This document shows, piece by piece, positions 59,492-63,424 of a stretch of 64,000 bases of DNA. The translations under genes and the position numbers were made by a program. The notes under the pieces were generated by a model, which saw only the letters and a program-made list of their open reading frames with translations, was not told the origin of the DNA and did not search any database. Each line of letters begins with the position of its first letter. Position 1 is the first letter of the stretch. The DNA is taken from NCBI GenBank assembly GCA_002269645.1, contig NIVC01001674.1:95520-159519 (forward strand), read 5' to 3'. Origin of the DNA: Macrostomum lignano. Lineage: Eukaryota.

Positions 59492-62050
59492 TTTTATAAG
59501 GCGAGAATTTAACTGATTCTAACTTGCAGCGAGCTTCGCGCGTCTAATACTAATAGCTGATATACTAGGGAATCTATCTACTAACTGATAGGATGCTATT
59601 CCCTCTTGAGCACTTATTGGTATGGTATTCCCAACAGCTGCTTCACTACTAAACTTCCTAACTATTTGGTCTGGAGTTGGAGTCGGTATCGTAATCCCAC
59701 CGCTGCCACCAATAAAGTGCCCTCGCTTCTGGTTGCTTTGGCTCGGGTCTGTAGATCTTGAAATCCCACCGCTATCACCAGTGTTATACTTGGCTCTCTG
59801 GATTCTGGGGTGGGGTGGACTGCTGTCGTCCCGGACAACCTTAGCGAACACTTTTATGGGGGTTGAGACTGGGGAGAAATCTAAGATCAAGGGTAGTGCT
59901 GCCAACAGCGTGGGAACCGTAGGATCCGCAATGAAGGGGTCTGTTTGGGCTCCACGCAAATAAATAACGCTAGAACAACTAGTCTCAGATATTTCAATGT
60001 CCAAGTGACAGGACTCAATGGTAGCAAATGGCCTGAGCGGCGCAGTCCTGGCACTGACAATGTCCGCGCTTGAGCGTGTCTGAGTTTAGCTCTCAGAGGA
60101 CCCCTAACTCCTACTAACCTAATAGCTACGTCTCGCGCGGATGGGCGGCGAGGAAAGGTCTATGCGCCTGCGGCAGCAATAGACTCTAGGCCTATAAACT
60201 AACAGCTATTCTTAGAATCGCGCACGAGTGCTGCGACTGCACACTCACTCTCACTCTTATTCGCGCCTGTGTCGCGAATAGACACTAGCAGAATGGCTTC
60301 ACCAACTGATTTCCTGCCAATAGGGTTAGGCTGGGAAACCAGAGCTATAGCACTAGCAATGCTCTACCAAGACCTGCTCAGGAGCGTGCTTTCTGCTTGA
60401 GCGCTGCAATGCTCTACCAAGACCAAGTTTGCAGCTGCTTAGCGATGCTCAAAGCTCTACCAAGACCTGCTCAGGAGCTTTTGCTTCGCTGTTAACCGGC
60501 GCTAGAGCGCTAGACTTGGAGAAAGCTCTCGACAAGTCTGACCAGCGGTCAAAACGGTTCTGAGGAAAAAATTCAGACAAGCGGGCCTGCATTCGTTAAT
60601 ATAGAACGCGGAGGGTGGAGCATTTGGGCATTCCGTGGCTTGACCATGGAACTGTAGCCCGAAAAGTGCGGATAATGATGCACAACAGATATTGATTAAA
60701 CATGGGGGAGAGTAGCTTGTACGAAGCGCCGACAGTCGCCTCAAGCTACAGTGACAACAGCATGCCAAATTTGGGCTTGTGCGCACAAGGCTGCACGTGA
60801 GGGAGGGTTCAGCTCGGGACACGGGGTCCGCGAAACCCTCAGTCTAAAAATAGAATGACGCAGGGGAGAGGCTCGGACGCAGGAGGAACGAGAGAGCAGA
60901 AGGGGGAAGAGTCCAGAGAGCGCACGGGGAGGAGTGCGGCTAACTAGACTTGCGTACACTGAGCGATTGTACGCGGCAGGCCAGGCAACAACAGTACAGG
61001 CAAGCGCCAAATTTGGCGGCTTCCACTAACTAACCCTAGGCTAGGCAAACTTCCTAATTTCCTATGTTAAAGATTGCGCCATATTGTGCAACTTCTGAGC
61101 GCCAAGGAAGGCTGCTTAGAGTGCATGGAGGCAGCAGAAAATTCCTATTCCAGATACTAGCAGCGGACAGAGTGCCTAAGATGTGACTGCGGCCCTATGC
61201 TTGCAGCAGAAGGCTGCGGCCACATCACAAAGCGCATCAACAAGTACCAAATTGCCTCTGAATTGAGTCTGGTCTGAGTAAGTACTTCAGAGCCAATTAT
61301 GTTGGTGCCTCGGCAGGCCATTTCTGGTGCATAACCGACAGGTCCATAGTTTTCGTCCCCGATTATTTTGACCTTGCTGCGGCTGAGGCTAGCGCACTTT
61401 CTGTGGAACCTTCTATGACAGTCTGTGCAACTTAGAGCTTTCGAGTTTGCACGGAGCTCGGTCTGGCACTGGCTGCACTCCCTTAGCTCAGTGGGTTGAC
61501 ATCTGTTGCACTGCCACTCTAACTCACAGGCTACGCAGCGGTTCGTTTCTCCTCTTGACCGGCCTAAGCAGCCGAGTTGGGCTTCGGCTCCGCATTTGCA
61601 GCACTTGACCCGGTTGGCCCTGAGCCAGGTCGGGTTGACAGCCGACGCCCGAGCCCTCCCCCACAGAAGCGGCCCTCGAGAACCCGTGTGGTACCAGTTG
61701 CAACTATGGGCTGTCGATGGGTAGTTGGCGCTTTTCCAGCAGCCAACTACTTAGCAGCCACCTGCCCTGCAAAAAAGCAGCAGGGGGGATCCTCCACCAG
61801 CAGACCAAGACGAGAAAGCTAACCGCTTCCGCGCCAGGCCAGAGCGAAAAAGGAGGGGAAAAGCCTCATCGAAAAGCGAAAAGCTGGCGGATGTAAGAGT
61901 CCCTCGGTTTAAGTTCCATTTGCCCCCCCCCCTTGTAAAAGAAACTGCTGGCGAACAAATATTATTAGCAGTTTCAAGCGTTTATTTCAAATCAAACAAC
62001 ACAAGTAGTTGTACAAAGTGGTGTGAAAACAGAGTTGGTTAATAAGCAAA

Positions 62051-62967
62051 TTACGACAACATAAAGATCTTCTTGAACGGGAAGACCGAATCGATCGGTC
62101 GTTGCTCGTTAGGTTCGAATTTTACGTTGTACTTTGTGAGCAAATGCTCGTAAAGTTTAAACATTAAATTTGAATTAAAGCCAGAATCTCCTAATAAGCA
62201 GCAAGGCGCACGGCGGACAGGTTCGTTGAGGTGACTTGCTCTTTTGGGAAGCAGGTAAGCTGTAGAAGTGTGAAGTCCGGCCTCGACAGTCTCGTGCCGT
62301 AGAAGTTGTGGCCAAGGAAGTAAACCTCGGACCAGTTCCTAGTCACGATAGACTTAGAGGTTGTGACCTCCATTCCAAACAGTTTGAATTCAGCTTCAAA
62401 CCGAGAAAGAGGTGCGTGGAATGGCGCAGTAAACACGGAGTCGTCGCCGAGAACACGCGTGATGCAGTAACGTCCAAACACTTTCTTCTGAACGGCGAGT
62501 GTACATGCGAGATTAACATAAGAATCGCAGAGTTGGGTAAACATCGATTCCGGATGTACACCTGTCGTAACAGAGTAGAGTTTGCCGTCTGGCATCACAA
62601 GTGGCGTCTTCATAAATAATGCTCGCGAATAGTCAAGAGCAATCTTGTCAGTAATGACAATGTTACTCTCAATCCAGTCGAAGAAAGATTACTTGAGCCA
62701 GGAATTGACACGAGCATCGAACTTCGACAAGTCGATAGCGTAAAACCAGAGATGGTCTGGATTCATGCTAGCAACGTCGAGCGGCATTTCTTTAAATAAA
62801 TCACGTCCTATATACATTGGCGTGTCGGTAACGGTAGCCGCTTGAATCATGGGCTGGGCCGTGAGGCCTTCAATCAGCACAGAGTGAAACGGGCGTCCCC
62901 ACACATGGCGGATCTTCGGCGTGCTGCGTGGCGCAAGTTGCGTACGCGCAAACGTTTTGTCCGGAAC
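62051..62967 (-). pseudogene. Endogenous partiti-like dsRNA virus RdRp (motif F to C-terminus)
   Basis: [11 protein letters not shown]...[12 protein letters not shown], motif A IDLSKFDA, motif B G..(S)MFTQLCDSYVNL, motif C VLGDDS, FLGH, LLGDSG; one TAA (62689-62691) and one frameshift (~62195). Confidence 0.9.
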
Positions 62968-62969
62968 GA

Positions 62970-63424
62970 AGCGATAAACAGGAAAGTCTCTGATTATCTG
63001 ATTTCGCTTAACAGAACCGACTTCAGGGAGATGTGCATGGTCCTAACCGGCCATGGATTCTTCCAGAGACATCTCGTTGCAAACCGGTTGCCCTCCCACC
63101 TGTCCTTTCTGTGGCATAGGAGAGGAGACCGCGGAGCATCACGTCACCTTCTGCCCTTACTTCAACAAGGTGCGGCACAAATACCTCGGCCACCCCCAGC
63201 GGATGGACGAGCTGACCACCCCGGACAATATCCGTGACCTTCGCGCCTTCGTCCGGGACTCCGGCCGGATGAGGTCGCCGATGTCTCCACTGCGAACCTG
63301 CCGACTACTGGCGGGGACCGGGTGCACCCCCAAGGTTAATCCTGTGCTGTTTTACCTTGGGGTTGCGATAGGGGCCTCGCGGCGCCTGCGCTCCCCGTCA
63401 GTAGTAAGTAAGTAAGTAAGTAAG
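62970..63424 (+). mobile_element. 5'-truncated non-LTR retrotransposon (LOA/R1/I-group-like) 3' end with (GTAA)5 tail
   Basis: [11 protein letters not shown] then, frameshifted, [20 protein letters not shown] (C-terminal CCHC finger), short 3' UTR and simple-repeat tail at 63404-63424. Confidence 0.85.

Follow-up and report, generated by a model that had tools for sequence, protein, structure and literature searches.

The stretch of DNA analyzed here is 64,000 nucleotides (64 kb) of the genome of the flatworm Macrostomum lignano (contig NIVC01001674.1 of assembly GCA_002269645.1, positions 95,520 to 159,519), which we refer to as the window. Close to its right end, the remnant of a gene encoding a partiti-like virus's RNA-dependent RNA polymerase (RdRp) lies on the minus strand and abuts, on the plus strand, the 3' part of a long interspersed nuclear element (LINE). 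We read the region 61000-64000 directly and translated its minus strand. The translation of approximately 62000-63000 matched the Pfam family RdRP_1 (E=1e-28, profile positions 144-430 of 450), and its score of 100.8 bits was above the Pfam gathering score used as cut-off (23.9). A protein search with this fragment retrieved 21 full-length RdRps of ~452-470 amino acids, 40-51% identical to it and nearly all found on contigs of ~1.5 kb. The closest relatives with a name, at 44-46% identity, were Xinzhou partiti-like virus 1, Scaphoideus titanus-associated partiti-like virus 1 and the cluster of Wuhan large pig roundworm virus, while the nearest of all was an unnamed contig (51%); an integrated copy from Trichogramma pretiosum was also among the matches. 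A profile hidden Markov model (HMM), 464 positions long and made from 20 of the 21 relatives, matched the window between 62979 and 62054, i.e., over positions 152-464, in pieces with E-values of 7e-54, 5e-45 and 9e-13. The natural stop codon of the RdRp is found at 62051-62053 on the minus strand. The remnant (62051-62976, minus strand) corresponds, by Pfam, relatives and profile alike, to the C-terminal two-thirds of the polymerase (profile ~152-464). An earlier examination of this DNA from its letters alone (hereafter the sequence-only reading) had proposed a partiti-like RdRp insertion on this strand and a check of it with HMMs; the identification has held and the check was positive. The same reading had the gene running to its stop, as it does, but took what is left for one half of it, which is too little.

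Of the bisegmented dsRNA genome of partiti-like viruses (Durnavirales), in which the capsid has a segment to itself, only this fragment of a gene is present. It is disabled by an in-frame stop and a frameshift, one of each. Motif A (D-x4-D) and then GDD can be read among the palm motifs of the translation, and at least one other core motif has non-conservative substitutions with respect to all the relatives, as is expected in a decaying copy. Both disabling mutations are signs of neutral decay and argue against a viral contamination of the assembly, and the viral sequence is contiguous with a LINE of M. lignano type inside 64 kb of DNA rich in retroelements. Judged by these features of its sequence, the viral part is an endogenous viral element (EVE) that preserves the C-terminal two-thirds of a partiti-like polymerase. 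An invertebrate partiti-like lineage whose identity to all sampled sequences does not exceed 51% has once infected this host lineage or else something that lived in its germline, and the infected host may have been the flatworm itself. A closer virus was sought in JGI metagenome contigs and in IMG/VR, where only relatives of 43% identity were found, and a PDB sequence search with the RdRp fragment gave no match. RdRp-like proteins of M. lignano were absent from the results of a word-indexed protein search, an absence that carries no evidence since the same indexed search also missed all 63 relatives of the LINE described below. Finally, neither tblastn of the relatives nor the profile detected the first third of the RdRp (profile positions 1-151) anywhere in the window, the 576 nt that follow the LINE on its right included.

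The LINE was recognized by an exhaustive phmmer search with a 120-amino-acid open reading frame (ORF) at 63053-63415, which gave 63 matches (best E=1e-41); a word-indexed protein search with the LINE ORF gave none. The top matches belong to M. lignano, as do all the named proteins among the 13 close matches that were looked up, and the ten best relatives are 91-96% identical in amino acids to the window over the aligned stretches. The LINE family by itself thus points to M. lignano or a species very near it as the host. Two proteins align at 62977-63280, a distant full-length relative (P0078) carrying Exo_endo_phos_2, RVT_1 and RNase_H and another one (P0051) with RVT_1 and RNase_H, the homology being to the C-terminus of the ORF2 of proteins with an APE endonuclease, a reverse transcriptase (RT) and an RNase H. 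The Pfam match to zf-RVT was weak (E=0.023). What is left of ORF2 (62977-63339, plus strand) includes an LTGHG..HL motif and a CCHC-type zinc knuckle, ends at its natural stop codon (63337-63339) and carries two frameshifts relative to the members of the family. It is followed by a 3' untranslated region (UTR) at 63340-63402, in which homology to the family continues to ~63397, and by a microsatellite tail, (GTAA)5 or equally (AGTA)5.8, at 63403-63425 (period 4, 5.8 copies and 100% matches in Tandem Repeats Finder). The end of ORF2 together with the 3' UTR (63296-63412) contains inverted repeats and is predicted to fold into a stem-loop of -62.4 kcal/mol (z=-4.18), as stable as none of 200 shuffles, so that the tail is preceded by a structured UTR. 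The flank after the tail is AT-rich and begins with GTTAAT. The element is strongly 5'-truncated, in that an ORF2 whose full length is at least 1200 amino acids has been reduced to its final ~120 codons, left along with the 3' UTR and the tail, and many copies of the family are truncated at varied points (e.g., P0025). The claim of a 5'-truncated plus-strand LINE ending in (GTAA)5 is confirmed by these data. We had hoped for a second EVE in a protein of M. lignano among the matches (P0031, UniRef100_A0A1I8IZK2), which bears the name 'RNA-directed RNA polymerase', and discarded it for having neither a match to the RdRp profile nor any Pfam domain. Its sequence resembles LINE ORF1/ORF2 and the UniRef name looks like a slip of annotation. 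The partiti-like profile found nothing in any of the other LINE matches either.

The viral and LINE parts meet between positions 62976 and 62977, with no filler and sharing at most 2 nt. The tblastn alignments of the viral relatives start at 62976 and those of the LINE relatives at 62974-62977. At the junction (62974-62977) the first codon conserved in the viral polymerases, that of Tyr in the YRFVPDK block, occupies 62974-62976 and the first one shared with the LINE family, that of Asn in NRKVSDYL, 62977-62979, and from 62977 onward 15 of 15 residues are identical to those of LINE proteins of M. lignano. In some tblastn alignments the RdRp extended to 63012-63024; we rejected this extension, given that the profile HMM ends at 62979 and that the DNA from 62977 is LINE on the other strand. 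At the level of these protein comparisons, the microhomology at the junction is resolved to 0-2 nt. The two parts are arranged head-to-head, each one 5'-truncated at the junction and 3'-complete at its outer end. The direct abutment described in the sequence-only reading is real, and its location has to be shifted to this point from the 62967-62975 given there.

On the other side of the RdRp, directly downstream of its stop codon, there is an AT-rich stretch that we consider a candidate viral 3' UTR (61936-62050, minus strand). Its GC content is 0.32 compared to 0.59 in the flank at 61500-61935, its outer boundary is not fixed, since the edge, which the sequence-only reading put at 61980, could be anywhere from ~62010 to 61936, and its predicted fold is not significant (z=-1.1). 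The 3' UTRs of four relatives measured 16-134 nt, had no poly(A) and contained no motif that could be aligned to it. The stretch could be viral UTR or, as well, part of an AT-rich target that resumes at 63425-63600 (GC 0.36). Just beyond it, ten consecutive C occupy 61924-61933 (G when read on the strand of the EVE), which could be host flank or a non-templated addition at the end of a complementary DNA (cDNA). A shorter TTGCCCCCC motif recurs in the right flank (63702-63710).

The reading that we favour is one retrotransposition event, in which the RT of the LINE joined the viral sequence to its own truncated copy. We give it slightly more than even credence, as an explanation that fits the data and falls short of being proved by them. 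An RNase-H-bearing LINE of a family abundant in M. lignano would have started target-primed reverse transcription at what is now the right end (63425), on its own structured 3' UTR and (GTAA)n tail. In LINEs of the 'stringent type' a 3' architecture of stem-loop and short-repeat tail implies that the RT starts on the element's own 3' end, so a foreign RNA would be captured only after initiation. Once ~450 nt of LINE RNA had been copied, the nascent cDNA would have been joined to sequence of a partiti-like double-stranded RNA (dsRNA) virus in a germline cell. In the route to which we give a narrow preference, the RT would have switched templates to a minus-strand molecule of the virus and followed it as far as its 5' end, which would leave the RdRp stop codon and 3' UTR present and the first third of the gene missing. 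The acceptor must be the minus strand in this case because a template switch keeps the polarity of the LINE. A single priming event would suffice, and the switch would account both for the completeness of the viral part at its 3' end and for the precise junction. That LINE RTs fuse foreign RNAs to the 3' parts of 5'-truncated LINEs is documented (PMC2104539; bioRxiv 10.1101/2025.02.02.635956). Arrival of the two parts together is also supported by the conservation of both 3' ends, with the stop and the AT-rich downstream stretch on the viral side and the ORF2 stop, the folded UTR and the tail on that of the LINE. The stop and the frameshift in the RdRp and the two frameshifts in the LINE would have come later, leaving a non-coding fossil. 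There are two disabling mutations in the 923 nt of RdRp versus two in the ~360 nt of ORF2, which besides differs by ~6% of its amino acids from young copies of the family; this similar density may hint, weakly, at an equal age of both parts.

Several observations weigh against such an event, and above all against a template switch. For this route a minus strand of the dsRNA virus, free and shortened at its 3' end, would have to be available, and such a strand normally stays inside the capsid. If copying had run off the end of the viral template the viral 3' terminus should be present, and we could not locate it by means of the 3' UTRs of the four relatives, because no relative exceeds 51% identity and the UTRs do not align. 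We compared the locus with five hallmarks of LINE template-switch chimeras taken from the literature (PMC2104539). Two are seen, namely that the 3' part is a LINE truncated at its 5' end and that the parts are joined directly, two are lacking and one is ambiguous. The 5' part is not full-length, with only positions 152-464 of the 464 of the profile present. The direct joining ought to be in the same orientation, and here the coding strand of the RdRp is opposite to the LINE, so that the orientations agree only if the viral minus strand was copied. Flanking direct repeats were not found either: the best candidate for a target-site duplication (TSD) around the composite was a 10-mer that 92 of 1000 shuffles matched and whose right copy is 36 nt away from the tail. 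Besides, all comes from one locus, for which no paralogous or orthologous copy was retrieved. A second copy was absent from the window, and exact-product look-ups of two window ORFs and of the protein P0028 returned nothing. The sequence-only reading had suggested a template switch onto the viral minus strand or, alternatively, twin priming; the geometry agrees with this suggestion and the hallmarks deny it the status of proof.

The twin-priming alternative deserves attention as a variant of the same single event. One end of the target, the nick in the bottom strand, would have primed on the LINE tail. The other DNA end of this break, paired with AT-rich sequence towards the 3' end of a viral plus-strand RNA (mRNA), would have primed a second cDNA, with the two incomplete cDNAs finally joined head-to-head. 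Two head-to-head arms, both 5'-truncated at the junction and one of them ending in a LINE tail, are the geometry of twin-priming inversions, a dsRNA virus is abundant in free form as its plus strand, AT-rich sequence (GC 0.32-0.36) is found in the presumed target as well as after the RdRp stop, which would favour annealing, and an overlap of no more than 2 nt is compatible with joining by microhomology. On the other hand, the classical form uses one RNA for both arms and a heterologous second template would have been necessary here, priming near the viral 3' end is a coincidence unless AT-rich regions are favoured, and there is no TSD. We regard this variant as rather unlikely, an estimate that is comprised in the credence given to the single event and not added to it. 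The lack of TSDs, already stated in the sequence-only reading, extends to each part taken separately; independent duplications, which would have spoken for separate insertions, were looked for by shuffle-tested searches and by alignment of the flanks, and nothing above chance appeared. The best match around the LINE alone was reached by 110 of 1000 shuffles and that around the EVE alone by 976 of 1000, the similarity between the left and right flanks, in both orientations, was within the range of the shuffles, no pair of long terminal repeats (LTRs) was found around the locus, and Pfam scans of the flank ORFs and of further window ORFs gave no match.

No TSD around the composite or either part is what would also be seen if two unrelated events had brought the parts together, either an older and longer EVE, integrated by whatever route, clipped by the insertion of the LINE with deletion of the target DNA in which the first third of the gene lay, or a later deletion spanning LINE and EVE. 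The window is dense in retroelements and repeats (an LTR element at 15367-22770, gag-like ORFs, a LINE fragment at ~5929-6314, satellites), which means that chance adjacency is not rare, and truncated copies of the LINE family, cut at varied points, are numerous. However, two coincidences are needed, a hit within ~1.5 kb and a deletion that left a clean tail and junction, while retroelement-virus chimeras are a documented route, and for this reason we rank the single event higher. Neither are the intact 3' ends of both parts predicted by a random deletion, and since the RdRp's first third has left no trace on the right side of the LINE, the LINE did not simply split a longer EVE. Two separate events are in our opinion unlikely, if by no means far-fetched. 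Much less credit is due to a cDNA made by the viral polymerase itself and pasted by DNA repair beside a LINE copy that was already there. The sequence-only reading had taken for granted that RNA viruses depend on the RT of retroelements to integrate, which is now contested, as RT activity in vitro has been reported for partitivirus RdRps (PMC8557412) and invoked for partiti-like EVEs in mites (PMC13517406), and the absence of TSD and poly(A) is compatible with capture by repair. Still, the activity is only putative for the invertebrate partiti-like clade, and a break exactly at the 5' truncation point of the LINE, whose own left flank must have been replaced, would be left unexplained; we find this very improbable. 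Equally slight is the probability we assign to an artefact of assembly, a chimeric contig joining unrelated reads between 62976 and 62977. The genome is very rich in repeats and a LINE family with many nearly identical copies can mislead assemblers, but an RNA virus is not present in DNA reads unless integrated, the viral stop and frameshift are typical of genomic decay, and this LINE copy is diverged from the young ones, which makes its collapse onto another copy less likely.

This arrangement has partial counterparts in known systems. Chimeras made by template switching of LINEs, such as U6-L1 in mammals and WEIRD and Mg-SINE-MGL in Magnaporthe (PMC2104539; bioRxiv 10.1101/2025.02.02.635956), share with ours the copy of a foreign RNA fused without filler at the 5' truncation point and the retention of the LINE 3' end and tail. 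In those chimeras the copy is full-length, sense, in the orientation of the LINE and flanked by direct repeats, whereas ours is viral, represents only two-thirds of its segment, is coded on the strand opposite to the LINE and has no detectable TSD. The inversions by twin priming of L1, reportedly described by Ostertag and Kazazian in 2001, also consist of two 5'-truncated arms set head-to-head, joined where hardly any microhomology or none is seen, one of them ending in the LINE tail. Both of their arms derive from one LINE RNA, and here the two do not, one being the RdRp of a dsRNA virus. The bornavirus-like EBLN elements of mammals, which Horie et al. are said to have shown in 2010 to be non-retroviral EVEs mediated by LINEs, are again fragments of an RNA virus gene endogenised with the help of a LINE RT. 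They look like processed pseudogenes of viral mRNA, with poly(A) and TSD and no LINE attached, in contrast to the present case, with neither poly(A) nor TSD and a fused LINE 3' end. Chimeric cDNAs and EVEs of viruses with LTR retrotransposons have reportedly been found in insects (Goic in 2013, Whitfield in 2017 and Tassetto in 2019), and recombinants between lymphocytic choriomeningitis virus (LCMV) and the intracisternal A-particle (IAP) are said to have been found by Geuking in 2009. Likewise, viral RNA was recombined there with a retroelement in reverse transcription and viral fragments sit in transposon-dense regions. Their partner is an LTR element that for the most part shares the orientation of the viral part, unlike the non-LTR partner, the head-to-head arrangement and the flatworm host found here.

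As to the viral side, partiti-like RdRp EVEs of the same clade, with small RdRps of ~460 amino acids, are present in the genomes of arthropods, in the copy LOC106655011 of Trichogramma pretiosum (P0017) and in the RdRPs of Brevipalpus yothersi (PMC13517406). The Trichogramma protein is 41-42% identical to the RdRp fragment of the window. It is nearly full-length (profile positions 25-464) and those of Brevipalpus are intact and expressed, while the copy in Macrostomum is truncated, broken and fused to a LINE. In the stretch of KZ542965.1 that we examined (L002), part of a 5.6-Mb scaffold, the Trichogramma copy extends over 5858-7191 with one frame change near its start, and the Macrostomum LINE family was not found within 6 kb on either side of it. 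One more case appeared among the relatives (cluster P0006), an intact partiti-like RdRp of 452 amino acids annotated as KHN74396.1 of Toxocara canis on a contig of 843 kb, which clusters at 90% identity or more with copies on contigs of virus size (~1.5-1.7 kb). Either it was integrated in the nematode very recently or the genome assembly took up sequence of a virus.

The entry into animal germlines of RNA viruses that lack an RT of their own is known mainly from the pseudogene-like copies made by L1 in mammals and from the chimeras with LTR elements in insects. The locus described here provides the junction of a dsRNA virus gene with a non-LTR element at the resolution of one base. Arthropod partiti-like RdRp EVEs (PMC13517406), endogenisation mediated by LINEs and chimeras of retroelements and viruses are already known in kind. 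What is new are the host lineage, Macrostomum being a genus of free-living flatworms, the viral lineage, with at most 51% identity, and the base-exact head-to-head fusion to a non-LTR element. In the paper library searched, neither Macrostomum nor any other flatworm turned up with a partiti-like EVE or virus. Most likely the locus is now a neutral fossil in a transposon-dense region, with both remnants broken. A bolder proposal, which we consider improbable, is that the RT of the LINE copied the minus strand of the dsRNA virus in the germline of the flatworm, that the junction is the direct footprint of this copying and that the fossil, antisense to the LINE in a transposon-dense and strand-biased region, may feed the production of virus-derived PIWI-interacting RNAs (piRNAs). 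If it were true, genome strands sealed in capsids would be within reach of the retroelement machinery of the host. We know of no description of EVE-based immunity in the phylum of flatworms. For M. lignano, a laboratory model whose genome is polyploid, there are several assemblies and published small-RNA data. These existing data could answer whether the two parts arrived jointly and whether the locus yields small RNAs, both questions being accessible to a descriptive analysis of what is already at hand.

The remainder of the window appears to be made largely of repeats, as indicated by the proteins retrieved in the LINE search, several of which match elsewhere in it. A second and distantly related LINE fragment is located at ~5929-6314 on the plus strand, with matches from three of them (P0056, P0076 and P0078), and ORFs of repeat families at 38884-39225 and 45079-45501, on the minus strand, match a chimeric protein of 3935 amino acids (P0056). 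Another element is a unit resembling an LTR retrotransposon (15367-22770, minus strand), in which three ORFs follow each other in a single frame and are parted by single stops only: a gag-like ORF (21103-22770) containing a zinc knuckle, an ORF of 511 amino acids (19567-21102) that matches the Pfam family Monjiviricetes_fusion, the fusion glycoprotein of negative-strand RNA viruses (E=4.6e-10), and a pol of Ty3/gypsy type (15367-19554) with protease, RT, RNase H and integrase. A PDB sequence search gave no match. The position of an env-like gene of Monjiviricetes_fusion origin between gag and pol is unusual. A satellite of ~740 bp with a period of 21 bp, formed by units of the GGGTCACATCACCAGTCA type and showing higher-order structure, occupies 57038-57780. 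Long ORFs made of short in-frame tandem repeats (SVCL, QQSSD, AVSAPP and SADEDAA units) are found at 3681-4328, 26692-27498, 39742-40791 and 44971-46152. Together with the large ORFs adjacent to such repeats at 43363-44967 and 52375-54933, for which Pfam gave no match, they may represent uncharacterised repeat families of this genome.

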